Sequence record: NC_005260.1
Direction: 5' to 3' (one strand)
DNA: 64,000 nucleotides
Notes under the pieces: generated by a model
Told to the model about the DNA's origin: nothing
Database searches by the model: none
What the model saw: the letters and a program-made list of their open reading frames with translations, nothing else
Part shown: in pieces, positions 22,356-57,871 of the stretch
Layout of the letters: each line of letters starts with the position of its first letter
Numbering within the stretch: position 1 is the stretch's first letter
Made by a program: the position numbers and the translations under genes

Positions 22356-22384
22356 ATGATACATCAAGATCATCAAGTAGTCAA
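22356..22384 (-). promoter_or_regulatory. sigma70-type promoter for 47-46
   Basis: TTGACT-N17-TATCAT. Confidence 0.65.
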
Positions 22385-22504
22385 CATGTGCGCAGCACTT
22401 CGAGCGCAGCGAGACAAAACAAAATCTCTTATAGATCTTTAATGAGAATCTATTTTGTCTTCCTTAAGGTAATCAATGAGTTAGCTTCGCAGTGGCAAGC
22501 CACT
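22385..22504 (+). repeat. non-coding palindromic element, copy 1 (core 22413-22493)
   Basis: 80/81 nt identical to the reverse complement of 49542-49622. Confidence 0.9.
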
Positions 22505-22512: not shown

Positions 22513-22534
22513 AAAAAGCCACCCGAAGGTGGCT
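22513..22534 (-). terminator. UUCG-loop terminator
   Basis: AGCCACC-TTCG-GGTGGCT-TTTT. Confidence 0.85.
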
Positions 22535-23097
22535 CAAATGTCAAGCGTCTTAGCTTTGATGTATCCAGTTTGTTCGATGTACTGTTCTAACTCTTCCTTC
22601 GTCCACCGCTCTTTGTCAAGAGAAAGCACTTCCTTGATCTTTTCCTGATACTTTGTTCCCATTGCGTCATAATCTTTACCGCATCGATTTTCATAACGCT
22701 GTCTGGCCAACGATTCATCAATAGGAAATTCTACCATAACGAAATCATATTTCAATCGCTTGTACTCAATAACAGGTTTGTGTCCGTCTAAAATAACGTA
22801 TTCATACCCCATAGACTCAAGCTGTTGTAGTGAGTGCTGCAACGCGCTGTTAAATTGTACTGCCGGAGTAGTCTCGAAACAATGGTATGTGTGATTTGAA
22901 CTCCTACATTTCTTATTTCGATCATATGCCCCGATTGCGCAGATTTTATCATTAAACTTGGTATAACTAACTGTTGTTCCTTTAGGAGAAGGACAATCAA
23001 TTTTATTTCTTGCATCCGGATTGAATTTATCTACCAGCGAATACATATAGGTAGTTTTTCCTGCACCAGGAATACCTAATAGCATTATTACTCTCAT
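22534..23097 (-). CDS. P-loop nucleotide-kinase-like protein
   Basis: LLGIPGAGKTT Walker A; VILDG; RQRYENR lid-like motif. Confidence 0.7.
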   Translation of the reverse strand: MRVIMLLGIPGAGKTTYMYSLVDKFNPDARNKIDCPSPKGTTVSYTKFNDKICAIGAYDRNKKCRSSNHTYHCFETTPAVQFNSALQHSLQQLESMGYEYVILDGHKPVIEYKRLKYDFVMVEFPIDESLARQRYENRCGKDYDAMGTKYQEKIKEVLSLDKERWTKEELEQYIEQTGYIKAKTLDI

Positions 23098-23124
23098 ATT
23101 ACCTCTTTAGTTTTTCATAACCTA

Positions 23125-23154
23125 ATTATGGCATACTTTATTTGCAAAGTAAAC
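23125..23154 (-). promoter_or_regulatory. T4-early-like promoter for the kinase gene
   Basis: GTTTAC(T)...CATAAT, 17 bp after TTTACT. Confidence 0.65.
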
Positions 23155-23156
23155 AT

Positions 23157-23176
23157 AAGGCTCCCGAAGGAGCCTT
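23157..23176 (-). terminator. UUCG-loop hairpin/terminator after the 964-aa gene
   Basis: AAGGCTCC-TTCG-GGAGCCTT. Confidence 0.7.
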
Positions 23177-23178
23177 TA

Positions 23179-26073
23179 TTACGCAAGTTCTAATCTGTGA
23201 GGTAGATATTGCAGTGCAGGCGCTGCACCCGATATCAAGTTATTATCGGTTGTTGCTGTACCAGAAGCGAATCCAGTTGCCGATATCAACTTGGGCAATT
23301 CAACCGCACCAGCGGTTTGCCATGTGTTTGCTGTTGTGTAATATTTGATTCCGAATGATCCGGTTGCACCGGCAGCGGCACCATCAAGATAATAAACAGT
23401 AACAGGTACAAACCAGATATTACCAGCAGCATCTTTGCCTAATATCAATTTGTAATATTCGGTCGGCACGGTTGCTGCTGCGACTGGGTCAACGTCACCT
23501 TGTCCACCGGTATATATATTATTCACGATAAACCCAGCGTTATTCAACGTGCTTTGTTTATTAGTTTCAAACTGAACTCCAGCAAATGCACCATCAAAGA
23601 ATGTATCATTATCCGTACCGCCCACAACAGCACCAAATTTCTGAATTAAAAACCAGAATCTAGCTCGTTTCTCTGGGTCAGTTGAACCACATCGCAACGC
23701 AATATCACTGGCTGGTAGTGTATTCACATACGATTGGAAATAGAAATCAACTACGTGCTTTGTAGGACTATAAACGTTTGTTGTATCTCTTGTAACGAAG
23801 TTCTTTGGATCACCAACTCCGGTATTAACGACTTCTGTTACAACTTTAGAACTTCCAATCTGACGAATCATCGCATAACTTGAACCTAATGAGTTGTCAT
23901 CGCCATAAATTGTATGTCCACCACCGGTATCATAAGTAACTCGAACTTTTACCTGCATATCAGCCGTAGGTGTTACAATTGATCTAGCGATGGACTGTGT
24001 GCTAAAGTTTTCCGTTGATGTTGCTGCAACTTTACCTCCATATGTACCCGGTAATCTGTTATTAGCAGAATCAACCCAGGTATATGCAAATCGTCCATTT
24101 GCCCCAAGTGAAGTAAACACATCACAAACTAACTCATACGTCTTATTTGCTTTCAGAGTAAACACACCGTTATTATTAACAACTTCTCCAATCGAAGTCA
24201 CATTAAACGCAAATGGCAAATCAAATTGTGTGTTGGTACCAGCAGCAGAATATCCAGTTGTGAATCTAGCAAGCAAGAAATCAGTTCTGTCGCCTTCTAA
24301 TATAACAGTAGATCTATTATCAACAATATTTGAACCGTCAATTTCTTCTACCAGAATCCAAGTATCACCGCCATCATTAGAGTTCTCGCCTCCAGCAACA
24401 ATATTATGATTCTGTCCGGAATAAGCACAACGAAGACTGATCATATTATTTTCTGTTGGAGTAATATATGCAATTCCAACCGGAGTATTTGTGTATGCAG
24501 TAGATCCCCAGATACTAGCGTACATCTGATCCGCTGGCCAAGACGCAGTTGTATCATTAAACACACCCCATCTAGCCCAACTTGTTCCTAATCCAGAAGC
24601 AGATATGTTATAAGTGATCTTATATGTATATCCAGATCTCAATGCAATTTGTGTTCCATTGCCTCTTGCAATATTATCGCCAACGCTTCTAACTGTCGTC
24701 AGTGATAATATCGAGTTTAATGTTTGTGCCAATGCGGTAGCAGATAATTTAGCAAACATATGTCCACGAGCTGTGCCAGTTGCAGATGATGAAGTTAATT
24801 TCCAGTATCTAGTAGCAAGCACAAACTGATAACTATTACCAATGGGTGAGGTATAAGTTGCATTGTTTGCTGGATTACTTGGGAACGTGATTGTTTCCAT
24901 TTTGCCATCATAATCTGCCCATGAGTTATCCGGACGATGTAATAGAACTTGATTCAAGTTCATATCAAAGTAAATCTTAACTCCGAATGTTGGTACACTA
25001 TACGAATTTGTCAATCTATAGCTTGTGTATGACTGATTCATATCGACTGTGCCAAGTCTTACCCATTCTTTTCCAGCATTGAATATTTGACCAGGCGACA
25101 CGTTTTTGGTACAAATATAAACTGCTTCCGCTAGTCCATATCTGACTAGATCTCCAGTATAATATTGACGGTCGATTTCAAATCCAACAATATTCAATGG
25201 CTCAAGTTTAGATAGATAATTCTGTAGACCGAATGCTGGCACATTACCAACCAACGGCATCCATTTTGTCATATCCAGTTTGATTGTGTTTGTTGAATTC
25301 AAAGTCTGAGTCGAAATAACATAGCACATATAAAGTGTAATATCAGAATCATTCAACGCAATAACATCACCGAATGTATAGTTAGTATTAACAGCGGGAA
25401 CAACTCCTCTCCACACTGGTTGATATCTACCACCATTCAGTACCGGTCTGAATGTCTGTGTGTTACCAGAACCCCACGCGAAATTCGTACCAGCGACGAT
25501 GGCCGCGTTGGCCTGCGCAATGATACCCTGATAAGATACAATCGCATTAGCATCGTATGAAAGACTGGTACTGAACACTGGTGCAGTTTTAAAGCCAGTC
25601 AGTTTTGTGAAGTAATTCAGTTCCGTAATTGCTTTGCCAACGCTAGTAATACTCGCACGATACAGATCTGTCCTGTAATAGAACATATCACCCTTGGCAA
25701 TAACACGATCTAGTAGCGGGTTAATTTCATCCCAATCCGGTACGTTAGTAATTTCTGCCGCTGTTGTTAACTCTTTCCAGTTAGTTGATAATGTACCAAC
25801 TACGAATGGAGTATCATACGGCATATCACCATTTGCGCGATATACTTTATTATCACGGTAACATAGATCGTCTTTGATCCAACTTCTTTGTTGTTTCCAA
25901 TCCGGTACGTTTGCTGTTAATGCGGCTTCTGGCAATTGTGATTCCAGAATCTTACCATCGCTATCTGTAATAACGATATGAGTGGAAGAAGCATCAGCCC
26001 AACGTCCATCATTCCACACTTTCGGAATGTTATCTTTGATTGGCTGTGTAACTAATGGTATTCTTTCTGCCAT
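23179..26073 (-). CDS. large virion fibre/adhesin-like protein (CBM5/12-like and C1q/BclA-like repeats)
   Basis: 964 aa; N-terminus paralogous to 26137-29346; own CTAAATA late box at 26100-26106. Confidence 0.65.
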   Translation of the reverse strand: MAERIPLVTQPIKDNIPKVWNDGRWADASSTHIVITDSDGKILESQLPEAALTANVPDWKQQRSWIKDDLCYRDNKVYRANGDMPYDTPFVVGTLSTNWKELTTAAEITNVPDWDEINPLLDRVIAKGDMFYYRTDLYRASITSVGKAITELNYFTKLTGFKTAPVFSTSLSYDANAIVSYQGIIAQANAAIVAGTNFAWGSGNTQTFRPVLNGGRYQPVWRGVVPAVNTNYTFGDVIALNDSDITLYMCYVISTQTLNSTNTIKLDMTKWMPLVGNVPAFGLQNYLSKLEPLNIVGFEIDRQYYTGDLVRYGLAEAVYICTKNVSPGQIFNAGKEWVRLGTVDMNQSYTSYRLTNSYSVPTFGVKIYFDMNLNQVLLHRPDNSWADYDGKMETITFPSNPANNATYTSPIGNSYQFVLATRYWKLTSSSATGTARGHMFAKLSATALAQTLNSILSLTTVRSVGDNIARGNGTQIALRSGYTYKITYNISASGLGTSWARWGVFNDTTASWPADQMYASIWGSTAYTNTPVGIAYITPTENNMISLRCAYSGQNHNIVAGGENSNDGGDTWILVEEIDGSNIVDNRSTVILEGDRTDFLLARFTTGYSAAGTNTQFDLPFAFNVTSIGEVVNNNGVFTLKANKTYELVCDVFTSLGANGRFAYTWVDSANNRLPGTYGGKVAATSTENFSTQSIARSIVTPTADMQVKVRVTYDTGGGHTIYGDDNSLGSSYAMIRQIGSSKVVTEVVNTGVGDPKNFVTRDTTNVYSPTKHVVDFYFQSYVNTLPASDIALRCGSTDPEKRARFWFLIQKFGAVVGGTDNDTFFDGAFAGVQFETNKQSTLNNAGFIVNNIYTGGQGDVDPVAAATVPTEYYKLILGKDAAGNIWFVPVTVYYLDGAAAGATGSFGIKYYTTANTWQTAGAVELPKLISATGFASGTATTDNNLISGAAPALQYLPHRLELA

Positions 26074-26099
26074 TTTGTCAATCCTCTTGTTATATTGAT

Positions 26100-26130
26100 T
26101 ATTTAGAGAAAAGCCACCCGAAGGTGGCTT
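26100..26130 (-). promoter_or_regulatory. terminator plus late promoter cassette
   Basis: AAGCCACC-TTCG-GGTGGCTT-TT then CTAAATA and leader CAATATAACAAGAGGA. Confidence 0.8.
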
Positions 26131-26136
26131 ATTATA

Positions 26137-29100
26137 TTATGACATTTTTGTGATTTTCCACCACATTCTATTAGATGATGGAGCGGCATTTGCTCCATTA
26201 CCAACGGTAACATCAATTTTTAACTTGATGTCTCCTGCGGCTGTATTTGATACCAACGCACATCCAACAGAAGCGTCGCCATCTTTCCAAGATGATGATG
26301 TAGGCCAGAAACTAATAGTTTGTATGCCTCCAGTTAATGTGGCATTACTAACACTACCTAATGTTGAGTAGTAGTATCCATCTGCAATAGATCCATTTGA
26401 CATTGCCCATTGCCATTCAAAAATATATTTCCCAGCGGGAAGAGTTAACGTTGATGTACCAACACCACTGACACCAATTGAGTCTATCAATGAACTGAAT
26501 ATTGCTGAATATCCCGTGCTTGCGCCGGTGTTGGAGAATGTTCCCATTGCCATCTTCGGACTAACATACGCGGCAACCGCTCCGCTGTTTAGTGTAGTGA
26601 CATCAAATCCAATTCCCCCTAATCCAAGCGTATTACCTCCCCCGACTGTTAGCGTCAACGGCAATGCAGGTAAAACTCCTATTTGAAGCCATACTAAGTT
26701 GTTAGTTGGTCCATTTGCAACGTAAGTTCCGGTAACGGATCCGGCTACCCAAACTCCGACATAATCTCCGATTTTAACTTGTGAACCGGGAGAAACGGAA
26801 GTAGTTCCACTCGCAAATGTTGTTGTGCTAACGAGATCAAACTTACCACCAGTGCTAAAAGAACTTTCGCCTATTTGCGGACGCATAACAACAACTGCGC
26901 CAGATGATCCGTAATTGGGAATTCTAACAGTAGACAAAATACCGTCTACGTTTATTCTTGACTGACGATCAAGAAACACGTTTGGTCCACCCATAGTAGC
27001 ATTTGGAGCTGGATTTTGTCCTTTAGTAACTACTCCCGTACTACTAGCAGCAGTCAACGGTTTCCATTCCCCAGATCCATAAAGAACATAGTCCTGTGTA
27101 TTAAGTGGAGCGGCAGCAAGAGCACCAGCTTTACCTTGAACTGTTGCGGTAGATCCCTGGAATATTGGGAATGCGCCGGCTGTTCCGGATATCTGAACAA
27201 CGGTCCACTGACTATAACCGTCGGATGTAGATGGATATGTTTTGTCGCGACTTCTAACTAACGCAATTTCCAAATTTTTCGTGGGTGTATAAATGAAATT
27301 ACCACCCTGTCCTCCGGTTGCTTGTGATGTACCGGATGCATCAGAAATTAACAACTCACCTGGATCAATATATAATCCGTCCGTGATGTTTCTCCATCTA
27401 AACGCGGCATATTCGGCTCCCGATACGTGTATAGATGTGGTAATCATATAAGTTTGATTTGCTTTTAGTTGCACTCTGTTGTTTGTGCATGTTATTCCGT
27501 AATTCTTCACGGAAACAATTGGCATCAAACTACCGGTAGTTTGAACGGTCTGAGCAACAGCAGAAATTGTACCACTAACAAAAGGAATTTCGGAACTCAA
27601 TAATTCGGCTGGATCTTTCCATTCTCCGTCACCAAACAGAATCTTTTTCTCGGCACCCGCAACAGGAGCAGCAACTACACCCGGTTTACCAGGAGTCGTA
27701 TTAGTTGCGCCTTGAAAAATAGGAAGACTACCATTAGATCCAGATATTTGCATCACGCTATATGAGCTAAACGGCTCATGCAATGCAACCGCACCTCCAG
27801 TTCGTTTCAGATAAATCGTTTCATTCACTGTTGGAGAATAAATGAATGTTGTACTAAGTGATCCAGCTTCATTTGCGGTATGTGTTACTGTTATTCCACT
27901 GAACGGAGCGGGGCCAATTAGTCCGGTTGTATTAACTGCATTATTATTTGACCATTGAAACGTTGCTGATCCTAGTGTCGATACAAGATAAACATTCGTG
28001 GAAATCAAGTATGTCTGATTTGCTTTTAAATTGATTCCGTTCGAAGTTATTGACATATCGCGTGATTGTGTTGCTGATAATGCGACAACTGTTCCGTTCG
28101 ATACGTTCGCCGCTTGTGTTAGTCTGCCCTGAATATAAGGAACATCTGATAATACACTTCCACCTCCGCTTCCAACTTTCTTCCATGTTGCACCCGTTGT
28201 TCCTTCTACAAATACGGTATTTGCGGGAATAGCCGCATTCGAGATATACAACTCTCCGTTGTTTCTAACGAGCTGCAATGCGTTGTAGGCTTGATTCGCA
28301 ACGAAGTCAGTAACAGCCCCACCTCCCAGTGCTTTCCATGTTGCACCAGTCGTTCCAACAGCCCATAACGTATTCGCAGGGATATCAGCGTTTGCGATAT
28401 AAGTGTTTCCGTCTGTGTAGACGACTACTGTATTCTTTTTATATGCGCTCGCAAATTTCCAAACGTTATAAGTTAGATCGTCTGCTTTGGAAAGATAATT
28501 ATCCAGTATAATCGGAGTATCGTTAATCAAAGGTGCCCAATATGCTGGAAGCGGAGTTGTTTCTGTTCCGATAGGAGGAGCAGATGCAGCAACACAAACG
28601 TAAAGAATATTGGATCTGGGCGTAGGGGCGATTACATCACCATAAAAGAAACCCTGACCATTAGCAGTCATCACACCTCTCCAAGCATACTGCAAATATC
28701 CGTTGAATAGAACTGGACGCCATGTAACTGCTTGACCACTCGCTCCCCACTCAAATGGAACATTACCACCAATGTTTGTGTTTGGTGTTACATAATATCC
28801 TTGCCAGCGAATAAGTTCACCGGCGGTATATGATTTGGTATACACATAAGATGGCGGCAACGTAAATCCTGTCAACTTTTCAAAATGATTAGTAGATGTT
28901 ATTTCATTTCCTACGTTATTCGCCCGAGATCTATACAGCGAACCGCTGTAATAATACATTTCTCCTTCTCGAATAGCGCGATCTATTCCAGGATTATATG
29001 CTGTCCAACTCGGAACGTTTGAAATTTCTGCCGCAGATGTAACGAGTTGCCAAGTCGCACCACCAGTAGATATTACAAATGGAGTATTCGCAGGTATATC

Positions 29101-29346
29101 AGTATTAGCGCGATATACCTGTCCGATATGATAAGCCAACGCTCCTGCTTTCCATGACTTAGATTGTGCCCATGTTGGAGCATTAGCAACAATTACTTCC
29201 TCAGGAATAACAGAACTTGAAATTTTACCATCGGTTCCCTTGGTAACAATATCAGTTGTTGGCGCATCAGCCCATGCTCCATTTAGCCACACTTTTGGTG
29301 TAGTTGTTTTCGGAGGCTGTAAGACTAATGGAATTCTTTCTGCCAT
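26137..29346 (-). CDS. large virion fibre/adhesin-like protein (CBM5/12-like, C1q/BclA-like and fibre-shaft repeats)
   Basis: 1069 aa; repeats of Y.AN..IPANT....G..GATW; two LKANQTY domains; two PIFQG.T...G..G...A...L.G.GEWK shaft motifs. Confidence 0.65.
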   Translation of the reverse strand: MAERIPLVLQPPKTTTPKVWLNGAWADAPTTDIVTKGTDGKISSSVIPEEVIVANAPTWAQSKSWKAGALAYHIGQVYRANTDIPANTPFVISTGGATWQLVTSAAEISNVPSWTAYNPGIDRAIREGEMYYYSGSLYRSRANNVGNEITSTNHFEKLTGFTLPPSYVYTKSYTAGELIRWQGYYVTPNTNIGGNVPFEWGASGQAVTWRPVLFNGYLQYAWRGVMTANGQGFFYGDVIAPTPRSNILYVCVAASAPPIGTETTPLPAYWAPLINDTPIILDNYLSKADDLTYNVWKFASAYKKNTVVVYTDGNTYIANADIPANTLWAVGTTGATWKALGGGAVTDFVANQAYNALQLVRNNGELYISNAAIPANTVFVEGTTGATWKKVGSGGGSVLSDVPYIQGRLTQAANVSNGTVVALSATQSRDMSITSNGINLKANQTYLISTNVYLVSTLGSATFQWSNNNAVNTTGLIGPAPFSGITVTHTANEAGSLSTTFIYSPTVNETIYLKRTGGAVALHEPFSSYSVMQISGSNGSLPIFQGATNTTPGKPGVVAAPVAGAEKKILFGDGEWKDPAELLSSEIPFVSGTISAVAQTVQTTGSLMPIVSVKNYGITCTNNRVQLKANQTYMITTSIHVSGAEYAAFRWRNITDGLYIDPGELLISDASGTSQATGGQGGNFIYTPTKNLEIALVRSRDKTYPSTSDGYSQWTVVQISGTAGAFPIFQGSTATVQGKAGALAAAPLNTQDYVLYGSGEWKPLTAASSTGVVTKGQNPAPNATMGGPNVFLDRQSRINVDGILSTVRIPNYGSSGAVVVMRPQIGESSFSTGGKFDLVSTTTFASGTTSVSPGSQVKIGDYVGVWVAGSVTGTYVANGPTNNLVWLQIGVLPALPLTLTVGGGNTLGLGGIGFDVTTLNSGAVAAYVSPKMAMGTFSNTGASTGYSAIFSSLIDSIGVSGVGTSTLTLPAGKYIFEWQWAMSNGSIADGYYYSTLGSVSNATLTGGIQTISFWPTSSSWKDGDASVGCALVSNTAAGDIKLKIDVTVGNGANAAPSSNRMWWKITKMS

Positions 29347-29372
29347 TTTTATTGTCCTCTTGTTATATTGAG

Positions 29373-29411
29373 TATTTAGTGTAAAAACAAAAAAGCCACC
29401 CGAAGGTGGCT
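29373..29411 (-). promoter_or_regulatory. terminator plus late promoter cassette
   Basis: AGCCACC-TTCG-GGTGGCT-TTTT then CTAAATA (29373-29379) and leader CAATATAACAAGAGGA. Confidence 0.8.
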
Positions 29412-29417
29412 AATTAA

Positions 29418-31739
29418 TTAAGGTGTAACGATTATTTCTTCCAGATAAGGAACACCTGCATCCATAATAAGCTTATATTTCTTGGCTGTAGCAGCATCGG
29501 TAATTACGTCAGACGCAACTTCCTCTTCTACCAACTTGTTACCAACAACAACACGACGTTTTCCGTCATTTGTCGCTGGCTTAGCAAGTGCACCAACCAT
29601 ATCTGCTGTATAATCACCGGCTTGTGGAACAACGTTACCAGTTCTTGTATTGAATCCAGTTACAGATGTTGCAACAGAACCGCCGTAAGTCCAGTTCGCT
29701 TTGATGTTAGGCAATGCGAATGCGTCCAAATACCACTGATCTTGGGTGTCAATCTGAATCGCAATAGTGAATCTATTTGCAACAGGCAAAGACAATCTAG
29801 CAGTTTCATTTGCAACGCTTACACGACGCAGTGTATCGATAGGAGGCAATTGCTCTACAGATACCTTACCGTCTTCACCCAATTTCGCAGCACCGTTAGG
29901 CACACCGAGTTTTACAGCACCATCGTTCTCGGCACTAGCTGGACGAACGTAAAGTTCACCAGTCGCGCTTACCAGCGTGTTACGGCCAGGCATAACGATT
30001 CCAAGCTCGGTCGGTTTAGCAACGTTCGCTAGATTTCGTTCAAGATAGAATGTGTTTGGATCAACTAGATTCAGGAACGATTCATTCTCTCCGATGTTTC
30101 GCATAATAACGAGTTTGTCGCCCGCTTTAAATGCTAACCCACCATAGTTAATCTCACGATCCGATCTCCAGTAGTCGTTCTTTGTCGCGGGAACGAATTG
30201 AGTCAAGTCTCTAGTGAAATTGATATCACCGCGCATTGTACCAACTTTAAATGTATCAGCATCTTTCAATGCGTTAATACTCAGTCGATTTGCACCTTGT
30301 AGAGTCTCAAGCATTCTAGCAACATCTGCACCATCTTCTTTGTTGATAATATCAACGGCACGGAAACGCATCAAATCCACAACTCGCCATGGTTCAGTTG
30401 GAACGGTTGTACCACCATAACACTTAATTGGAGTACCATCCGGTTTTACAACACGAACGTTAAGAATATTACCGGGCTGAACAAACAAGTTTCCCTGATA
30501 GTTAATCAGTTCTTCCTGTCTATCTACTAATTCCGCATTCTTCACAGTCTGAGAATAAATTAGAGTCAGTCCACCTTGTGACCATATTTGGAATTTAATA
30601 TCACCGACGTAATTCTCCGCAGGCATAAGAGCCATTCTAAGAATAGCCATTCTCGCTGGATATGGACGAGTGAAATTATAATCCACGATTTGTCCATAAT
30701 CGATATCACCGTTAAACGGAACTCTGTTCTCTCTTGCCTCAAATACAACCTCAGCAGCACCATAAATGCTTAGTCCGTCGTTTGATATACCTTGCCAAAC
30801 TGGATAGAAGTTATCACCCGTGAACACATTTCGAAACGCCATATTCTCGTTGTTAGAAATGATTTTATGTCCACCGATATCAATAACGTTTCTGTCTTCG
30901 GCATTTACACCGAATGGAATAGCTTTGAATCTCTGTGCTGGTGTCCATGAATGTTGATTGTCATTACTGAAACGAACATATTCATGAATACCATCTTGGA
31001 AGAATGATGTCCACGGACCCAATTCGGATGCAGAATATTGAGCAATAAAACTCAATCCATCTTGAGCAACGAATCTAAATGGAGCGTCAAAGGTTAATCC
31101 ACTATTAATAGAGATTCTTCCCCATTGTCTGAGATCTTTATCAAACGTGGTAGACCAAGGACCAGTCTCAGTTTCTCCATATTGATACACGATAGTATCC
31201 GCACTGATTTTAAATCCAGCAGTATAATCGATTCCTTCATTTACACTCATTCGTGCGTATTTGTGAGTTGCTTGATCGAAAGTGTTCACCCAATCAGAAA
31301 TACCATTAATTGAATACTGATACTTGACTTTATCAGCAACTAACTTGAATCCCTTTGACCAACTAACTTGATCGTCTCGACTGAATCGAATATATTTGCT
31401 ATTATCATCGGGCACTCCAAACCAGCCAGCGTCTCCCGGAGGATTATCTGCGCTATATTGAATAGAAACATCGAATCCGTCTTTACCCGCGGCACCTACA
31501 GCACCAGTGATAACAGCCGTTATTTCTTTCCAAGACGTATCTGCTTTTTTGTATTGGAATAATTGATATGTTCCCGGAGCAGTTGTGATCAATACAATAA
31601 GATCATCGAGCAAGCGTCCTGGATTATTTGTGAAAAACGTATCTCTAGCGGCAGTGCTTGCGAATCTCAAGTCGTTAGGAACAACAAGAGAGCCACCGCC
31701 CGCTCCACCAGATCCACCGCCTAAAACTATAAATGGCAT
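29418..31739 (-). CDS. tail-fibre-like protein with four tandem ~45-aa QYS repeats
   Basis: 773 aa; QY[SG]...W...F....Y.R.S.......F repeats; NGAAKLGEDGKV..QLP and SVTGFNTRTGNV...DYTADMVGA fibre motifs. Confidence 0.65.
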   Translation of the reverse strand: MPFIVLGGGSGGAGGGSLVVPNDLRFASTAARDTFFTNNPGRLLDDLIVLITTAPGTYQLFQYKKADTSWKEITAVITGAVGAAGKDGFDVSIQYSADNPPGDAGWFGVPDDNSKYIRFSRDDQVSWSKGFKLVADKVKYQYSINGISDWVNTFDQATHKYARMSVNEGIDYTAGFKISADTIVYQYGETETGPWSTTFDKDLRQWGRISINSGLTFDAPFRFVAQDGLSFIAQYSASELGPWTSFFQDGIHEYVRFSNDNQHSWTPAQRFKAIPFGVNAEDRNVIDIGGHKIISNNENMAFRNVFTGDNFYPVWQGISNDGLSIYGAAEVVFEARENRVPFNGDIDYGQIVDYNFTRPYPARMAILRMALMPAENYVGDIKFQIWSQGGLTLIYSQTVKNAELVDRQEELINYQGNLFVQPGNILNVRVVKPDGTPIKCYGGTTVPTEPWRVVDLMRFRAVDIINKEDGADVARMLETLQGANRLSINALKDADTFKVGTMRGDINFTRDLTQFVPATKNDYWRSDREINYGGLAFKAGDKLVIMRNIGENESFLNLVDPNTFYLERNLANVAKPTELGIVMPGRNTLVSATGELYVRPASAENDGAVKLGVPNGAAKLGEDGKVSVEQLPPIDTLRRVSVANETARLSLPVANRFTIAIQIDTQDQWYLDAFALPNIKANWTYGGSVATSVTGFNTRTGNVVPQAGDYTADMVGALAKPATNDGKRRVVVGNKLVEEEVASDVITDAATAKKYKLIMDAGVPYLEEIIVTP

Positions 31740-31749
31740 TTCATTCTCC

Positions 31750-32037
31750 TTATAATTTCGATACGCTTAGTTCGATTGTAGCAACATCGCTTTCTGATCT
31801 ACACCAAACTTCAAGACTTCCAGATGAAGCAATTACTTGTGATCCGAAATACATTCTACCGTTAAGCATATCTCCGTCTCTGCTAGACTCTAACGGTCTG
31901 GTGCCTTCTGCCAAAATACCAGCAACTCTAGGATTTAAGTTTTGAATTTTGAACTGAGTGCCGACTGGAATATTTGCAGTCGCATTCAGAGAAACCCAAG
32001 ACTTACCAACAGTTGCGTTTGGAATTGTCTGTGACAT
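31750..32037 (-). CDS. small beta-rich late protein
   Basis: 95 aa; GGAGA SD; directly behind CTAAATA at 32066-32072. Confidence 0.7.
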   Translation of the reverse strand: MSQTIPNATVGKSWVSLNATANIPVGTQFKIQNLNPRVAGILAEGTRPLESSRDGDMLNGRMYFGSQVIASSGSLEVWCRSESDVATIELSVSKL

Positions 32038-32065
32038 TCAAATTTCTCCTGTGATTGTTTTCTAT

Positions 32066-32102
32066 TATTTAGATAAACAAAAAGGGAGCCGAAGCTCCCT
32101 TT
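32066..32102 (-). promoter_or_regulatory. terminator plus late promoter cassette
   Basis: AAAGGGAGC-TTCG-GCTCCCTTT then CTAAATA. Confidence 0.8.
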
Positions 32103-33237: not shown

Positions 33238-33296
33238 GTATACTTCCCTCGTTTGTTTACAAGAGAAGTATACTATGAAAATTTGATGTTATAAAC
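33238..33296 (-). promoter_or_regulatory. gene 55 promoter embedded in an RBS-sequestering hairpin
   Basis: GTTTATA-N17-TATACT; 14-bp stem GTATACTTCTCTTG/CGAGGGAAGTATAC (2 G-U) covers GAGG. Confidence 0.7.
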
Positions 33297-34735
33297 TAAG
33301 GTCGCACACTATCGACCCAGTCTCGCACCATTTTAACATGCTCTGGTTGTATAATGTCAAGCTTATAATCCAACTTTCTGCACCAACGATAGAACTTTCC
33401 TTGTTCTTCTTTTGTCAACTCAAACATGGTGCCAAATGTGACTTTCTTCTTTCTAGGCGTAGTTTCTTTCTTACGCTCTTTTCGTTCTGGACCACTCACC
33501 ATATGTTCGGTATCAATCTTTGACTCAGGCAAATATCTAGATTTCAGATATTCAGCGGCTCGCAGATCTGGAACGATTAGCGTCACTTTCCATTTCGAAT
33601 GCTGATTTCGAATGTCAGTTCTCAAACAAAGCTGAAACACCGGCTCAAGGTATTTTGATACCAGATAAGCGTCGATCAGTTTGTTTGTGTCCATATTATG
33701 ACAACTCGACAAGCATTTAAGCAACTCAATTTGCCATGGCATAGGGTTATAGCTGAATAACGCTACCGCAGTCGTATGGCTCATGTAACTGTTAAGTCCA
33801 TGTGGATTATACGCTACCCTATGTCCTACTTTCAGTGCCGCTCTATAGCTGTTCGTTGTGTAGATGAAAGGGCTTATCCCAACTAAGTCGTAAACAACGT
33901 CCTTGACTTTGTTATAAACGCTTTCACCATTGACGTCCTTATCTGCCGCGTATCGAGACCATATACCGTCATAAACGGGAATAATTTCCACTCGATTTGA
34001 ATTCGGATACTGAATGAAATCCAGCTTCTTCATCAGCGGACTCGTTTTAAACTTCCAGCCGCAAAAGTCTTTCAGCACAACGCCAGTAAACGTTTCTCTA
34101 AAGTTGGCACAAGCGATTGTGATCTTATCGAACTTGTTCCACTTCTGTGTTGTGCTGTCATCTATGAAATACACCACATTGTCTTTGACTATAACAGGAA
34201 TGCCTTGCAATAGAGATCTCGCTAATGAGAAAACAGCACTAGATACAACGTCATGTCCATATAAACCGTCTGTTGCTATCTTGTTCAGCTTGTCTCTGAA
34301 ATCTTCATTCAGTGTCATTCTACCGTCTTCGATATTACAGTATTTTCCAATAAAGTCAAGGTTATCTGTGAACTTTAATTGATTCAACTGCACGAAATCA
34401 GGTACTTCGTCAATATACAATTCGTGTCCATTCAGATCTTCATAATCCGGATAAGACAATAAAGCGGCATGAGTAATAAACAACACACGATAATTGCCAG
34501 CACTTTCTTTGATTACTTCTGCCACGCTCTTGCTTCTGCTAACGTGATCCGAGTCGATGATAATACTATCACTTTCTCCTCCCAAGTTATTATAGAAGTC
34601 ATAGCTTTGTTGTGATAGCTGGCAACTAATTGATGCGATCACACACGGCTTTTTATTCTTTTTAACGTGAGTCAGAATTGCTTTTGTTTTACCAGCAGCC
34701 GGAACTGCCTGTAGAATCTCAACGTTTAATGCCAT
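33296..34735 (-). CDS. SF2-helicase-like P-loop protein
   Basis: AVPAAGKT Walker A, LYIDEVP Walker B, Q..LR..IR motif VI-like. Confidence 0.6.
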   Translation of the reverse strand: MALNVEILQAVPAAGKTKAILTHVKKNKKPCVIASISCQLSQQSYDFYNNLGGESDSIIIDSDHVSRSKSVAEVIKESAGNYRVLFITHAALLSYPDYEDLNGHELYIDEVPDFVQLNQLKFTDNLDFIGKYCNIEDGRMTLNEDFRDKLNKIATDGLYGHDVVSSAVFSLARSLLQGIPVIVKDNVVYFIDDSTTQKWNKFDKITIACANFRETFTGVVLKDFCGWKFKTSPLMKKLDFIQYPNSNRVEIIPVYDGIWSRYAADKDVNGESVYNKVKDVVYDLVGISPFIYTTNSYRAALKVGHRVAYNPHGLNSYMSHTTAVALFSYNPMPWQIELLKCLSSCHNMDTNKLIDAYLVSKYLEPVFQLCLRTDIRNQHSKWKVTLIVPDLRAAEYLKSRYLPESKIDTEHMVSGPERKERKKETTPRKKKVTFGTMFELTKEEQGKFYRWCRKLDYKLDIIQPEHVKMVRDWVDSVRP

Positions 34736-39959: not shown

Positions 39960-40219
39960 TTCAGATCCTCACATTGAGTAATAAGTTTAAAACCTTTGTT
40001 TTGCAGTGCATGTCGGATACTTGCATATGCATCAAACTTGCTAACAGCTTGTACCATGTACTTGTCAGTTTCGAATTCAGATACATCCAACTCTGGGAAA
40101 ACCTCAGAGAAACGACGCAATGCAACGGTACTTGCGTGTGCTGCCATACCGTCGATGTTAGCAGACACAAAGGCAATATTGCGCTTGTGATTAACAAAAC
40201 TTCTGACTTGATGTTCCAT
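39956..40219 (-). CDS. hypothetical early protein
   Basis: start revised to MEHQVRSF (GAGGA SD); promoter at 40248-40275. Confidence 0.75.
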   Translation of the reverse strand: MEHQVRSFVNHKRNIAFVSANIDGMAAHASTVALRRFSEVFPELDVSEFETDKYMVQAVSKFDAYASIRHALQNKGFKLITQCEDLK

Positions 40220-40247
40220 GGTGTATTCCTCTCGTTTCGATGTGTCC

Positions 40248-40275
40248 ATATTAGCAGATCAATACCATGTGTCAA
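40248..40275 (-). promoter_or_regulatory. early promoter
   Basis: TTGACA-N16-TAATAT with TG extension and leader GGACACATCGAAAC. Confidence 0.75.
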
Positions 40276-40292
40276 CTCTTTTGGAAAATAAA

Positions 40293-40312
40293 AATCCGCC
40301 CGAAGGCGGATT
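40293..40312 (-). terminator. terminator after nrdB
   Basis: AATCCGCC-TTCG-GGCGGATT-TTTATTTT. Confidence 0.85.
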
Positions 40313-45209: not shown

Positions 45210-45680
45210 TTACACATTTTGAGTGAAATGATTGTCAACGAAAGTCATTACATCAAGCCAGTGACGAGCCAGTTCCAAACGAGCTTCGTAAAACTTAACG
45301 TTCTTTTCGTAATAGCGTTCTTCGGCATATTGCATTTCGGGAGAATGGCCATCTTTGATGTCAATCAAAAACAGTTGTCCACACGTTTCTTTGTCCCAGT
45401 GACGATACATCGCCATAATTGGATCAGTCCGCAGAATACCAGCAACTTCGAACCCAACATGATAACAGACTCCACAGGCAATTCTATTTCGCGCCAGTGT
45501 TCGATCTGTGATCTTATACAAAGTTTTCATTGCATCGGCGTATCGTTCTGGCTTTTCGATTCGCAATTTAAGAAGATCATAATACTTTGTCAAGTTAGCA
45601 TCGTCCAGAAACTTGAGTTTCAGACGCTCGTTCTTGCTCATGAAAACGGATTTGATTTTTGCTCGCAGAACAGTAAACAT
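45210..45680 (-). CDS. ARLELARHW-family hypothetical protein
   Basis: ACGVC...YRHW...FYEARLELARHWL. Confidence 0.8.
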   Translation of the reverse strand: MFTVLRAKIKSVFMSKNERLKLKFLDDANLTKYYDLLKLRIEKPERYADAMKTLYKITDRTLARNRIACGVCYHVGFEVAGILRTDPIMAMYRHWDKETCGQLFLIDIKDGHSPEMQYAEERYYEKNVKFYEARLELARHWLDVMTFVDNHFTQNV

Positions 45681-45708
45681 GATATAACCCTCTCTATAAG
45701 ATAATGCC

Positions 45709-45736
45709 AGTATACGCTACTGGCATTAGGTGTCAA
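45709..45736 (-). promoter_or_regulatory. early promoter with 11-bp IR around -10
   Basis: TTGACA-N16-TATACT; TAATGCCAGTA/TACTGGCATTA at 45702-45728. Confidence 0.8.
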
Positions 45737-46600
45737 TTAGTTTTTAGCGATAGCCATCACATTTTCAATGACTTTCAGCCAATGCCGAGCAAGTTCCAGA
45801 CGCGCTTCATAGTATGCGGTATCATACTTCATCGAACAATAAACTTCGTCCTTGAATTGCTTGATTGCTTGGTTCCGCTTGTGATCTTCGATTGTGTAGT
45901 GTTTCGCACGAGGATCAGGCATAAAGTTCTTGACTTCATCGGTTTCAAGCAGGATGATGTAACCTTTCCAACCACTCCAGAATTTGTAGTCTTTAAGGAT
46001 ATACTCGCCATTCAGCTTGACTTTAATCATTTCACACAGACCTTCTTTGAGCTGATCGCGTGTGATTTTACCGATAATAACATCGCGCAGAATTTCGCGA
46101 GATTCTTCCCATTCAGAACGATTAAAAACACAATGCCGCACCAGATCATTCATATGAGCCTGACGTTCAACAGCATCGCAATACTCAGATTGCAGTTTCA
46201 GAATATAACGCAGCCAGTGACGAGCCAGTTCCAGACGAGCTTCCCAGTATTCATCATTACCTTCGGACTCTTCATCTGCTTCTTGATGAAACTGTGCGAT
46301 GGCTTCATTCAACGGATCGTCCATTTCATCGGGATTACCAATCAGAATGCTGTGACCTTCCCAGCCGCTCCAGAACTTGTATCCGTTCAAGATCTTTTCA
46401 TTGCACAAATCTACACCACCGGCCTTTGAGCCGACAATACGACATATGCCAATCTTGCATTCTTCGCGGGTGATACGTCCGTCGATGATATCATTCAGTT
46501 TCGCTTTGGATACGTCGAAACGTTCTTTGTTCTTGACGTAATATTTTACGTCTTCGGAAACAGTCGGGTCATTGATGATTCGGGTTTGCAGTTCGTTCAT
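45737..46600 (-). CDS. ARLELARHW-family protein with two domain copies
   Basis: two YKFWSGW.G...EARLELARHWL units. Confidence 0.85.
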   Translation of the reverse strand: MNELQTRIINDPTVSEDVKYYVKNKERFDVSKAKLNDIIDGRITREECKIGICRIVGSKAGGVDLCNEKILNGYKFWSGWEGHSILIGNPDEMDDPLNEAIAQFHQEADEESEGNDEYWEARLELARHWLRYILKLQSEYCDAVERQAHMNDLVRHCVFNRSEWEESREILRDVIIGKITRDQLKEGLCEMIKVKLNGEYILKDYKFWSGWKGYIILLETDEVKNFMPDPRAKHYTIEDHKRNQAIKQFKDEVYCSMKYDTAYYEARLELARHWLKVIENVMAIAKN

Positions 46601-46629
46601 GATTTATTCCTCAGTTGTTTGATGTGGAC

Positions 46630-46657
46630 ATCCTATCATGTCCACATTTGCTGTCAA
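46630..46657 (-). promoter_or_regulatory. early promoter with 10-bp IR around -10
   Basis: TTGACA-N16-TAGGAT; ATGTGGACAT/ATGTCCACAT at 46622-46647. Confidence 0.8.
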
Positions 46658-46660
46658 TCG

Positions 46661-47029
46661 TTATTGCAAAACAATTTTAGTTTCGATGAAATTGATCCAG
46701 TGACGAGCAAGTTCCAGGCGAGCTTCCCAGTACGGATCATTGTCACCGTATTCAGACTCTTCCAAATCTTCTTCTTCATGAAACTGTTCGATTGCTTGAG
46801 GCAGATGATCGTGATACCGACGGGACTCTTCGGTAGTTTCACCGACATACACACAATAGCCTCGCATACCACTCCAATATTTGTAGCCTTCGAAGACGGA
46901 ATGATCTGTCAACATATCGCAGTTAATCAGATTGCACAAGCCACCGCGGCACTCATATCGAGTAATGCGACCTTCTACAACATCTTTGAGGATGTAATAC
47001 GCTTTCATAATATTTGCATTCATAAACAT
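46661..47029 (-). CDS. ARLELARHW-family hypothetical protein
   Basis: start revised to MFMNANI (AAGGA SD); RGGLC...YKYWSG...YWEARLELARHWI. Confidence 0.8.
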   Translation of the reverse strand: MFMNANIMKAYYILKDVVEGRITRYECRGGLCNLINCDMLTDHSVFEGYKYWSGMRGYCVYVGETTEESRRYHDHLPQAIEQFHEEEDLEESEYGDNDPYWEARLELARHWINFIETKIVLQ

Positions 47030-49464: not shown

Positions 49465-49492
49465 AGTATAGCGATTGGATTCCTACTGTCAA
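49465..49492 (-). promoter_or_regulatory. early promoter
   Basis: TTGACA-N16-TATACT. Confidence 0.75.
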
Positions 49493-49528
49493 ACACTATT
49501 TTCGTTCGAATAGTAATCTACTCCAGAA

Positions 49529-49655
49529 AGTCGCGCCAGCGACTGCGAAGCTAACTCATTGATTACCTTAAGGAAGACAAAATAGATTCTCATTAAAGAT
49601 CTATAAGAGATTTTATTTTGTCTTTGTTCGCTACGCTCACAAGTGCTGGCGCACG
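49529..49655 (-). repeat. non-coding palindromic element, copy 2 (core 49542-49622)
   Basis: inverted copy of 22413-22493 with 1 mismatch; flanks partly conserved. Confidence 0.9.
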
Positions 49656-49739
49656 TTACCCGCGATTCCATTGCGTTCTAATACATTCGTATCAGTATAA
49701 CGTAGGAATCGCCGGTACGTTGATACCAGAGCTTTTGGC

Positions 49740-50201
49740 TTAATATCTGAGTGTGGTAGGTGATAGTCCAATTATACCACGATTGAAATCCAGCTCGATT
49801 CTATACCAGTTACCACGCTCTGTTTTCATATGGCTATCTCTTGTGACATCACAGTTCGGACTAGCCCATTGCAAAGTGTTTTTGATACCATCTGGAGTTC
49901 GATCTGAACTCATAACAACGATAACCCGTTTGCCTTCATTGACAATGCAACCACTGCTAATGAAATCAGCATTGAATCGACTTTCGGTAACATTAAATGG
50001 AGTCTGCACAAAACGCGCTGGAACGATTACCAAGTCGTTCCCTAGATAAACTGATATGTCTCCACTGTCCACGTCAAGCATCGCGTCCAATTTCGTTCCA
50101 CACACGTAGGCGTGATATAACTCGATTACTTGATTCGCAGTCATTTCTGGGCGTTCTTTGTGTGCCCTGAACATAGACATATTAACAATTTGAACTTTCA
50201 T
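49740..50201 (-). CDS. hypothetical protein
   Basis: 153 aa; AGGAG SD. Confidence 0.8.
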   Translation of the reverse strand: MKVQIVNMSMFRAHKERPEMTANQVIELYHAYVCGTKLDAMLDVDSGDISVYLGNDLVIVPARFVQTPFNVTESRFNADFISSGCIVNEGKRVIVVMSSDRTPDGIKNTLQWASPNCDVTRDSHMKTERGNWYRIELDFNRGIIGLSPTTLRY

Positions 50202-51134: not shown

Positions 51135-51517
51135 TAACGACCGTCCTTACAAGAAATGAAACCGAAGATACCGAGTTTAGAGCCCTGGGACATTGCATCT
51201 TGCCACTTGCTTACATGACCACGAACATACTTAGTAGCAGCTTTCCAACCGTTGGCTTTCAGAATCTCTCCGGTTTCCATGTTCACAAACCAAACAACAC
51301 TACGGGTAGATTGATTCGCATAGTCGGCTCGGAAGATTCTGGCATTCTTTTTGCCGAACTCAATGCCGTACACATAGCGAGAAATATTACCGTCTACCAG
51401 ACGCTGGGCATGGTCTTGCTCATAACGCTTGAAGAAATCTGGAACACTGATATCAAAATAAACGTGATCCGAAAACTCGTTCATTTCTTTTACCATTTGT
51501 TCGATTGCTGCTTTCAT
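51134..51517 (-). CDS. hypothetical early protein
   Basis: 127 aa; SVVWFVNMETGEILKANGWKAA..YVRG segment typical of a widespread phage family. Confidence 0.8.
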   Translation of the reverse strand: MKAAIEQMVKEMNEFSDHVYFDISVPDFFKRYEQDHAQRLVDGNISRYVYGIEFGKKNARIFRADYANQSTRSVVWFVNMETGEILKANGWKAATKYVRGHVSKWQDAMSQGSKLGIFGFISCKDGR

Positions 51518-51550
51518 TATGAATTCCTCAGTTCTTGTTTCGATGTGGAC

Positions 51551-51578
51551 ATATTATCAGGTCCACACCCAGCGTCAA
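51551..51578 (-). promoter_or_regulatory. early promoter with IR around -10
   Basis: TTGACG-N16-TAATAT; TGTGGAC/GTCCACA at 51544-51567. Confidence 0.75.
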
Positions 51579-51587
51579 GCAATTTTC

Positions 51588-52187
51588 TTAATTATTTTCG
51601 TCTGTATTTTCGTACAGATGATTGATTTTAGAAACATCAAATTGGTGATCGATTTCATCAAACACTTTTTGTACCATTTCTTTGATTTCGGCATTGTGAA
51701 GTGGACAAGTCCGATCAACTCGACGGAACGGATCTCCGCGACGGTGTTCCGGACAAGTGCAGTGTGGCAGATTGTATTTGTGGAAAGACGAATCGATATC
51801 AAAACCCCAGAGAGATTGCAATTCGTATTCGATGTCCTTTAGCCATGCAAGATGTTTGGCAATACGCTGTTTCTGTATCACATTACCAACAGTACCTGGA
51901 CTATAAAGTTTCTCGTTTTGAAGTTGCTTTACATGGATATCCCGATAGTGTTGCAACTGATCGATCTTGAGAATCGTTTCATCCGACAGATTTCGAGAGA
52001 TAGCCAGATCCAGATTAACGGTAGTGTGACGCTGTTTGATAGCGCGTTCCCATTGTTCAGCCATAAAAGCAATGATCTTTTGTGCATTCGGCCGGTCTTT
52101 TGCTTCGAACACGCCGAGAAGTTTCAGCGCGTCTTTCTGTGCCAGAAAGATACGGAGTTTATCCGCATCAGTTATCAGTTTTTTCAT
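51588..52187 (-). CDS. hypothetical protein with C-terminal Cys/His cluster
   Basis: start revised to MKKLITD; FHKYNLPHCTCPEH...CPLH may bind metal. Confidence 0.75.
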   Translation of the reverse strand: MKKLITDADKLRIFLAQKDALKLLGVFEAKDRPNAQKIIAFMAEQWERAIKQRHTTVNLDLAISRNLSDETILKIDQLQHYRDIHVKQLQNEKLYSPGTVGNVIQKQRIAKHLAWLKDIEYELQSLWGFDIDSSFHKYNLPHCTCPEHRRGDPFRRVDRTCPLHNAEIKEMVQKVFDEIDHQFDVSKINHLYENTDENN

Positions 52188-53346: not shown

Positions 53347-53390
53347 GATGTTTTCCTCAGTGCATTTCATTGATTGGTTTCGATGTGTCC

Positions 53391-53418
53391 ATAATAACAG
53401 GCAGATCCCAAGCGTCAA
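53391..53418 (-). promoter_or_regulatory. early promoter
   Basis: TTGACG-N16-TATTAT; leader GGACACATCGAAAC. Confidence 0.75.
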
Positions 53419-53437
53419 CAATTTTTTGGAAATAAAA

Positions 53438-53455
53438 ATCCGCCCGAAGGCGGAT
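53438..53455 (-). terminator. UUCG terminator
   Basis: ATCCGCC-TTCG-GGCGGAT-TTTTATTT. Confidence 0.85.
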
Positions 53456-55154: not shown

Positions 55155-55592
55155 TTAACTGCGGTCATCATCGAGGCTCGGTTCGTCCCAGTAATCATCC
55201 ATTTCAAGAGGATAATCCCAATTCAACGAATCAAACCTAGATTCGCGTGGTTTAAAGTCGATCATCAACTCTTTGCACATTTTCAGATAACGCTCAGCCG
55301 CTTTCCGTTTAAAGAACAGACGATGGCTATTATACCCGTTTTTGATACCCACGTTGCAGTCGATCAGACTGAATTCGCTGTTATGATTGCCGATAGTACC
55401 ATCACTGAATACATAGCCAGCGGGAACAAACAGAGAATCGCTTTCTCGCAGAGGTTTCGGAATATTCTTCCAGATGTGAACTTGCGGACGACCACGAACA
55501 ACGTACTTGGTAACAAACGAACTTTCGCCAAGCGCATGGACATAGTATACAGTTTTGCCAGCTTTGATATTCTTTTTGTTCATCTTTTTCAT
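55155..55592 (-). CDS. hypothetical early protein
   Basis: 145 aa; GAGGA SD. Confidence 0.75.
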   Translation of the reverse strand: MKKMNKKNIKAGKTVYYVHALGESSFVTKYVVRGRPQVHIWKNIPKPLRESDSLFVPAGYVFSDGTIGNHNSEFSLIDCNVGIKNGYNSHRLFFKRKAAERYLKMCKELMIDFKPRESRFDSLNWDYPLEMDDYWDEPSLDDDRS

Positions 55593-55620
55593 GATTATTT
55601 CCTCTCGTTTCGATGTAGTT

Positions 55621-55648
55621 AGTTTAACAGGTCACACATTGTTGTCAA
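55621..55648 (-). promoter_or_regulatory. early promoter
   Basis: TTGACA-N16-TAAACT; leader CATCGAAAC. Confidence 0.7.
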
Positions 55649-57790: not shown

Positions 57791-57830
57791 GATATTTTCC
57801 TCAGTGTTTGTGTTGCGTCTTGATGTAACC

Positions 57831-57858: not shown

Positions 57859-57871
57859 GAACTTTTTTCAA

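Follow-up and report, generated by a model that had tools for sequence, protein, structure and literature searches.

The 64,000-nucleotide stretch of DNA analysed here (the window) corresponds to bases 1-64000 of the genome of Aeh1, a T4-like Aeromonas phage of 233,234 bp (NC_005260.1; 100% match over 2 kb around the site, with identical coordinates), and carries two copies, c1 and c2, of a non-coding palindromic element. Because of the constraint on this element, its fixed positions, its independence of orientation, a conserved block that matches a DNA-binding consensus, and the covariation of its inverted repeats, we tentatively propose that it is an orientation-independent, cis-acting site on double-stranded DNA for integration host factor (IHF) and a phage protein, most plausibly gp224. 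From their sequence features, the copies most likely work as DNA sites to which proteins bind, and not as RNAs, and a structured RNA, as considered in the initial annotation of the window, is unlikely.

Two copies only had been described in that annotation, but BLAST and an end-to-end profile scan of the whole Aeh1 genome rendered eight, at seven loci, two of them in the window. All are intergenic, and three overlap tiny open reading frames called by gene finders. Their positions and strands are the following:

22412 (+), c1
49623 (-), c2
89990 (+), c3
230796 (-), c4
148908 (-), c5
119982 (+) and 120152 (+), c6 and c8, in tandem
187165 (-), c7

In sequence searches, related copies were confined to nine Aeromonas T4-like phages belonging to three genera (Aeh1, Ah1, avDM12-TAAL, PX29, AsFcp_1/2/4, phiAS5 and phiWae14). 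Host genomes (GTDB) and JGI metagenomes gave chance matches only (<=17 bits), the plasmids scanned held no copy, IMG/VR contained the element only in Aeh1, Ah1, PX29 and phiAS5, and no true copies were found in other phages. No published description of the repeat was found in the literature.

Anatomy and conservation of the unit

The unit starts at its 5' end with one or two GC-rich hairpins (GTGC-n-GCAC, GCGGC-GYA-GCCGC), often with a GCGNAGC motif, and continues with a core of 75 bp and about 75% A+T, which is flanked by GC-rich hairpins on both sides. The core comprises, in this order, a left inverted repeat (IR-L, AGACAAAATA), an asymmetric 27-bp centre that is well conserved except for its variable middle (AGATCT, AATACT, ATATCT or AAATCT), and a right inverted repeat (IR-R, TATTTTGTCT). 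A spacer of ca. 10 nt follows, free to vary in sequence but constant in length, and then the block (A/T)ATCAAT(G/A)AGTTAGC and the second GC-rich hairpin. The stem of this 3' hairpin differs between copies and is nevertheless self-complementary in its several versions (GTCGC/GCGAC, GTGC/GCAC, GCGCC/GGCGC, TCGCA/TGCGA); downstream of it most copies have TTTCT, a T-run being present only in PX29 c2, and most copies end in a tail, TTTCTGGAG...(A)TGAAC. The 5' module is approximately the reverse complement of the 3' module and the whole unit forms a long imperfect palindrome, the complementarity of the end modules being imperfect and clearest in c2, with the tail, which resembles a Shine-Dalgarno sequence and ATG, lying outside them. 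In the two window copies these parts are located as follows:

22388-22410 (+), c1 5' module, with the hairpin GTGC-GCA-GCAC (22388-22398) and the GCGCAGC mini-hairpin motif (22404-22410), from the sequence
22412-22486 (+), c1 75-bp core (nhmmer E 2.6e-21; 31-copy alignment)
22412-22421 (+), c1 IR-L, AGACAAAACA
Between IR-L and IR-R (+), c1 asymmetric centre, 27-29 bp
22451-22460 (+), c1 IR-R, TATTTTGTCT
22461-22470 (+), c1 variable spacer
22471-22483 (+), c1 match to the IHF consensus, AATCAATGAGTTA (consensus scan)
22491-22504 (+), c1 3' hairpin, AGTGGC-AA-GCCACT (sequence and fold)
49631-49654 (-), c2 5' module, with the hairpin GTGC-GCCA-GCAC (49654-49643) and a GCGTAGC motif
49549-49623 (-), c2 75-bp core (nhmmer E 2.1e-21), overlapped by the annotated gene Aeh1p059 (49489-49671)
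49623-49614, 49584-49575 and 49564-49552 (-), c2 IR-L, IR-R and IHF consensus
49504-49544 (-), c2 3' hairpin AGTCGC-TGGC-GCGACT (49544-49529) and then the tail TTTCTGGAG...TTCGAAC (alignments)

The reverse-complemented recurrence with one mismatch from which the initial annotation started is real: over 22412-22494 the two copies differ only at 22420 (C/T), a repeat search of the window recovered them as inverted arms of 94 nt with 94% complementarity (22403-22496 / 49539-49632), and the window has exactly two occurrences of a 41-nt segment of the core, compared with 0.00 expected (100 shuffles). Both terminal hairpins with the compensatory change in their stems are likewise present, each stem being self-complementary. 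The palindrome centred on AGATCT exists in c1 (47 bp, imperfect, GACAAAA...TTTTGTC at 22413-22459), but its centre is not conserved in other copies of the family. In c2, the 5' module pairs with the 3' module in the fold, an arrangement resembling that of terminal inverted repeats; c2 and the gene-47 copies of PX29 and phiAS5 also have a 5' module of the c1 type.

Synteny of all seven loci extends across Aeh1, Ah1, PX29 and phiAS5, which represent three genera, and no presence/absence polymorphism was observed. Orthologous cores of Aeh1 and Ah1 are identical at 583 of 600 positions (97.2%), versus a 33% difference at the synonymous sites of gene 224. Between genera, the cores are 71-84% identical, synonymous sites being saturated (pS 0.69-0.78) and flanking genes 73-77% identical. 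The earlier description of the element as non-coding, far better conserved than its flanks, and endowed with dyad symmetry and with hairpins that carry compensatory changes is supported. Paralogous copies within one genome are 88-100% identical, far above the cross-genus orthologues, and, as judged from these identities, the copies of one genome evolve in concert. The 3' modules are mosaic, variants A and B occurring with both core subtypes. The gene-47 copy of phiWae14 is 91% identical to that of Aeh1 and only 76% to that of phiAS5, although phiWae14 and phiAS5 are near-identical elsewhere, which points to local exchange between phages.

With respect to the flanking minus-strand genes of Aeh1, c1, c3, c6 and c8 are antisense and c2, c4 and c7 sense. 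Whole units, including the tail, have flipped at orthologous positions: c4 is on the minus strand in Aeh1 and on the plus strand in PX29 and phiAS5, and c2 is on the minus strand in Aeh1 and PX29 and on the plus strand in phiAS5. The asymmetric segment is conserved despite these flips, with which a function dependent on one reading direction in the flanking mRNA would be hard to reconcile.

The alignment, the counts of base pairs and the tally of IHF sites rest on 31 copies from five phages. The IHF consensus, which we take from the literature to be WATCAANNNNTTR, is matched perfectly in 8/8 Aeh1 copies, the whole Aeh1 genome containing 30 such sites versus 16 expected from shuffles; across the 31 copies the match is perfect in 22 and has one mismatch in seven, and information content is highest at two groups of positions fixed by the consensus, CAA and TTA. 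The two inverted repeats, of 10 bp each and 27 bp apart, pair in 94% of the cells of the alignment, 33 cells being unpaired. Every PX29 copy shows the compensated changes C-G to G-C and A-T to G-C, and five of them show C-G to T-A in the inner stem; a compensated C-G to T-A change also occurs in the gene-47 copy of phiAS5. Since the inner stem decays in PX29 and the consensus hairpin computed by alifold is weak (-6 kcal/mol), the conserved symmetry is, as far as the alignment indicates, that of two 10-bp inverted repeats and not of a stable long hairpin.

A putative complex of IHF and gp224

Between genes 14 and 15, c5 takes up all of the space from the gene 15 late promoter to Aeh1p224 (148189-148794, minus strand), and its tail is the Shine-Dalgarno sequence and ATGAAC start of that gene. 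In four genomes (Aeh1, PX29, phiAS5 and phiWae14) a complete unit likewise occupies all of the space upstream of gene 224. The tails of solo copies keep a decayed version of the gene 224 ribosome site and start, with the ATG lost or a stop after it (c6, ATGAACTAA; c7, ATGAGCTAA; c2, TTCGAAC), and three solo copies of PX29 share the tail ATTTGTACC. Because of this physical linkage between the element and gene 224 we consider gp224 as the specific partner, and infer that it binds the element. The initial annotation had proposed the helicase-like protein encoded at 33296-34735, for which no evidence was found; gp224, whose gene comes directly after one copy, is a better candidate.

The protein gp224, of 201 aa, matches the Pfam family CapR (PF21817, E 3.6e-5) and also the middle of PHROG "endonuclease" families. 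It consists of three CapR-type repeats only, with no nuclease or other domain, and the cysteines of its zinc-finger repeats (CxxC...CxC) are conserved. No NCBIfam match and no solved relative were found. A profile search of 1.8 billion representatives rendered 44 remote relatives; in the ten examined for domains, CapR, DUF723 and/or DUF4379 zinc-finger domains are present, 7/10 having 3-4 CapR stretches. gp224 has no paralogue in Aeh1, being the sole CapR-type protein there, shows purifying selection (dN/dS 0.10-0.15) and has exactly the distribution of the element, being found in the same nine phages. CapR itself has been shown by experiment to bind DNA through a zinc finger, and it represses a morphogenesis promoter of a phage at the -35 region; I-TevI is an autorepressor that acts at its own promoter, and in T5orf172 homing endonucleases CapR domains serve as the DNA-binding "beads" (PMC8096241, PMC10448857).

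A 340-aa remote relative of gp224 is encoded by gene 0005 of Aeromonas phage phiA047, an unrelated phage, beside nrdA; its position and size suggest a full-length CapR/T5orf172 homing endonuclease, likely of the kind from which gp224 descends. Two forms of late promoter are apparently used in Aeh1, namely CTAAATAC before gene 15 and p141, where it abuts the first hairpin of the repeat, and the canonical T4 form, TATAAATA, before gene 26. Late-promoter sites in the genome lie at 148940-148962, 89913-89945 and 119800-119812.

In the mechanism that we envisage, host IHF would bind the conserved WATCAANNNNTTR motif and bend the DNA sharply, and the bend would adjoin the inverted repeats AGACAAAATA and TATTTTGTCT, which would be bound by a sequence-specific phage protein. 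This protein could be gp224, a putative derivative of a homing endonuclease with three CapR-type zinc-finger repeats. IHF-bent complexes occur in site-specific recombination, at transposon ends, at lambda cos, in plasmid origins and in the control of promoters. The copy c5 would be the operator and leader of gene 224, which would be autoregulated, and would lie in a back-to-back arrangement with the late promoter of the morphogenesis operon of genes 15-24; the other six loci would be additional sites of this type, each having nearby a promoter directed away from it. The role of the complex might be local promoter control, or genome-wide initiation of replication or organisation of the DNA. Each solo locus does lie near a promoter firing away from it, at a variable distance, which fits local regulation or insulation.

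Several observations weigh against this proposal. The IHF match was noticed post hoc, and a 75-bp core has a probability of ca. 0.005 of containing a perfect site by chance; phiAS5 has changes in the inverted repeats that are not compensated, and in PX29 the inner palindrome is degraded; and gene conversion alone could yield the high identity within genomes. Distances between core and promoter range from ca. 30 to >120 bp, which argues against one fixed regulatory geometry, and a promoter of gene 224 was not found. With regard to gp224, its Pfam score is marginal when taken alone (24.3 bits, with a cut-off of 24.2), its AlphaFold model, made from six sequences, is poor (pLDDT 50), and its co-occurrence with the element may reflect only the shared ancestry of the clade. 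In homing endonucleases, CapR-type domains are believed to recognise long sites without symmetry, in the manner of beads on a string, and to our knowledge such domains are not known to bind inverted repeats as dimers.

A rather unlikely alternative is that the element is a portable cassette or selfish repeat, in which the 15/224 intergenic region would have been copied into promoter-bearing gaps without any site-specific function, gene conversion keeping the copies similar and the repeat serving as a patch of homology for modular shuffling. The gene 224 Shine-Dalgarno/ATG tail retained by solo copies would be understandable in these terms, as would the mosaic modules and concerted evolution within genomes, the closeness of the phiWae14 gene-47 copy to that of Aeh1, the large indels by c1, the replacement of the gene next to c2, and PX29 c2, which has a hairpin, a T-run and an early promoter in the manner of a PeSL cassette (PMC2839356). 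On the other hand, none of the seven slots is empty in three genera that are saturated at synonymous sites, the cross-genus identity of the cores is unattainable by within-genome conversion alone, neither target-site duplications at the flanks nor an internal promoter were seen, copies are missing from the other phages, hosts, plasmids and metagenomes searched, and even spacing of the copies would not be expected.

The spacing of the seven loci on the circular map, with the tandem pair c6/c8 counted as one locus and P referring to the smallest gap, is the following:

Aeh1, 233,234 bp: loci at 22.4, 49.6, 90.0, 120.1, 148.9, 187.1 and 230.8 kb; smallest gap 24.9 kb; P 2.6e-4
phiAS5, 225,268 bp: loci at 7.8, 46.0, 89.8, 115.2, 134.5, 174.2 and 204.4 kb; smallest gap 19.3 kb; P 4e-3 (analytic)
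PX29, 222,006 bp: loci at 22.2, 38.9, 77.0, 106.2, 135.5, 175.5 and 219.2 kb; smallest gap 16.7 kb; P 1e-2 (analytic)

The gaps in Aeh1 are 27.1, 40.4, 30.1, 28.8, 38.3, 43.6 and 24.9 kb (coefficient of variation 0.20), and the P value for the smallest, obtained against seven random points, becomes 1.3e-4 when real intergenic gaps are sampled. These tests were post hoc and, the three phages sharing ancestry, are not independent; with this limit, the even spacing suggests a genome-scale role.

One such role, which we hold to be unlikely, is that of replication origins or priming sites: the AT-rich core would unwind with the help of IHF, GCGNAGC-type hairpins would form on single strands, the seven sites would spread starts evenly over the 233-kb genome, and gp224 might be the initiator, with the origin next to its gene. 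An AT-rich core flanked by GC hairpins, with an IHF consensus inside, and loci evenly spaced in all three phages would fit an origin. IHF sites by AT-rich regions and inverted-repeat operators before the initiator gene are features of the R6K and pSC101 origins, and d(GCGNAGC) mini-hairpins are known from single-strand phage origins. However, the unit has no iterons or other direct repeats, cumulative GC skew is monotonic through both window copies, and the adjacent promoters fire away from the core and not through it, unlike the oriF/oriG type of T4, in which a middle-mode promoter fires into a downstream unwinding element. T4 does use at least five origins, but these have no common motif and work through promoter-driven R-loops, and none of the seven loci matches the T4 origins soc, rI.-1, repEA, uvsY or 34 (PMC3016281).

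It is quite unlikely, too, that the loci mark the genome every ca. 33 kb, with complexes of IHF and a domesticated gp224 organising some genome-wide process. If this were true, the process could be the initiation of replication, programmed breaks that seed recombination-dependent replication, or topological or loop domains, and the system would be sequence-defined and evenly spaced, in contrast to T4, whose origins lack a motif. Although T4-like phages are textbook systems, no common cis-acting sequence has been recognised for their origins or genome organisation; the element occupies seven syntenic, evenly spaced non-coding positions in three genera, under constraint above that of most codon positions, and offers a handle on the use of host architectural proteins by large lytic phages and on the domestication of selfish endonuclease genes as regulators.

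Action as RNA, whether as a hairpin that processes, stabilises or attenuates mRNA in the manner of T7 RNase III sites or REP stabilisers, as a small RNA gene, or as a translational leader of gene 224, is improbable: folding energies computed with RNA parameters do lie below those of shuffled controls (sense/antisense z of -5.0/-6.4 for c2 and -2.9/-4.8 for c5, weaker at -1.3/-2.7 for c1), hairpin stems co-vary, and c5 is the 5' leader of gene 224, with its 3' hairpin just before the Shine-Dalgarno sequence and a short upstream frame (MRIYFVF...) that stops one codon before the ATG, but the unit occurs in both orientations relative to transcription and flips at orthologous slots, the asymmetric block that is conserved best is a match to a DNA-binding consensus, only a weak hairpin is obtained for the consensus, and the short frame is not under coding constraint, with radical codon changes and a stop in c8. 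Scans of c1, c2 and c5 found no terminator inside the unit and no internal sigma-70-type promoter meeting their criteria, all promoters being outside it, nor was a late promoter found inside. Rfam gave no gathering-threshold match in the whole window, and at the locus (E<=1) only sub-threshold ones on the neighbouring terminator; no tRNA or tmRNA was found, and no MotA-box-like motif is conserved in the 31-copy alignment. Two promoter candidates picked by eye, TTGTCT-16-TRAGTT (sense) and TTGATT-18-TAGATT (antisense), were unconvincing. A search for RNA-seq runs of Aeh1 yielded only metagenome runs that contained 5-6% of the sampled words.

Surroundings of the two window copies

The first window copy falls in the gap from the stop of Aeh1p026 to the start of gene 47, the second in that between Aeh1p060 and Aeh1p058. 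As had been noted, c1 stands between a terminator and a promoter, both on the minus strand. The gap in which it lies is free of genes, but c2 carries an annotated coding sequence of 60 aa, Aeh1p059. The features next to the two copies are these:

22516-22535 (-), intrinsic terminator of Aeh1p026, which flanks c1 outside the repeat (terminator scan)
22356-22384 (-), sigma-70-type promoter of gene 47, TTGACT-17-TATCAT, which abuts the 5' module of c1 and fires away (promoter scan and annotation)
49465-49492 (-), early promoter of Aeh1p058, TTGACA-16-TATACT, which lies just past the tail of c2 and fires away (promoter scan)

Small coding sequences annotated in the repeat's own orientation overlap three Aeh1 copies (Aeh1p059, 49489-49671; p349, 230599-230766; p285, 187049-187153), and the extended start of phiAS5 ORF0008 lies on another copy. 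Since conservation there is not codon-like, these calls are probably spurious, and the annotation of the three tiny genes and of the extended start is to be corrected accordingly. A coding role of the MRIYFVF... frame, open in most copies and annotated as Aeh1p059, p349 and p285, was also considered and rejected: it has no Shine-Dalgarno sequence, its variable codons change radically, its conservation is independent of codon position, and it has a stop in c8.

The region next to c1 is plastic, the repeat lying at its boundary. About 9.5 kb by c1 (22534-32083), with Aeh1p026 and the very large hypothetical genes p027 and p028, are absent from PX29, in which a-gt.4, a-gt.5 and gene 55 come directly instead, and Ah1 lacks Aeh1 23180-31900. 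The giant genes p027 and p028 have direct repeats at their 5' ends (25948-26112 / 29221-29385, 165 nt, 72% identical), which suggests that they are paralogues; further direct repeats in their area are at 25732-25762, 25897-25927 and 29005-29035. Directly upstream of c2, Aeh1p060 (49740-50201) is replaced by unrelated sequence in Ah1, the alignment breaking at 49751-50188. Four copies of a 52-nt coding-like repeat, ca. 450-520 bp apart, are located at 45242-46732, probably as the sign of small paralogous genes arranged in tandem around Aeh1p052/p053. Separate from the palindromic element are repeated minus-strand cassettes that resemble PeSL, in which a GC-hairpin terminator (ATCCGCCTTCGGGCGGATTTTT type) precedes an early promoter (TTGACA-17-TAtaAT) and a conserved leader, at 40214-40311, 51517-51595, 53377-53455, 55587-55634, 57797-57875 and 58538-58596.

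Comparison with known systems

The Correia (NEMIS) elements of Neisseria, of ca. 100-150 bp, have terminal inverted repeats and an internal IHF site, and are found in both orientations in intergenic positions near promoters. The Aeh1 element is like them in size, in its internal IHF consensus, and in its orientations and positions, and its imperfectly complementary end modules recall their terminal repeats. Correia elements are, however, numerous, polymorphic between strains and flanked by TA duplications, whereas the Aeh1 element shows neither insertion polymorphism nor target duplication. A different parallel is that with CapR of PLE satellites and with I-TevI, since gp224 is made of nuclease-less CapR-type zinc-finger repeats, a unit lies directly before its gene, and c5 faces the promoter of a morphogenesis operon, a target of the type repressed by CapR (PMC8096241, PMC10448857). 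Unlike CapR, gp224 is encoded by the phage itself and kept in the whole clade, with seven dispersed putative sites instead of one promoter.

The BIME-1/RIB-RIP elements of enterobacteria consist of a REP, a linker with an IHF site and an inverted REP, and are thought to be architectural or topological sites at the DNA level, a likeness to the element described here, which like them is intergenic, is found in either orientation at the ends of transcription units, and has inverted GC-rich hairpin modules around a linker with the IHF consensus (PMC3333891). It differs from BIME-1 in residing in a lytic phage and not in a chromosome, at seven syntenic loci and not at hundreds, in that its AT-rich centre with the inverted repeats is the most conserved part, and in having no REP consensus with 5' GTAG, no sequence similarity and no copies in host genomes. 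No RAYT transposase was found associated with the element, although no search aimed at RAYT was made. With the PeSL cassettes of T4-like phages of the RB49/phi1 type it shares dispersed intergenic repeats by early promoters, stem-loops, and a link with plastic regions and recombination between copies; PeSL itself is composed of a sigma-70 promoter and a terminator and flanks ORFans in hyperplastic regions, while the element has no promoter of its own (PMC2839356). Unlike PeSL, the element is also present in late-gene regions, keeps its positions across genera, and has the IHF consensus and the inverted repeats. The element is analogous to both BIME-1/RIB and the PeSL cassettes and a member of neither.

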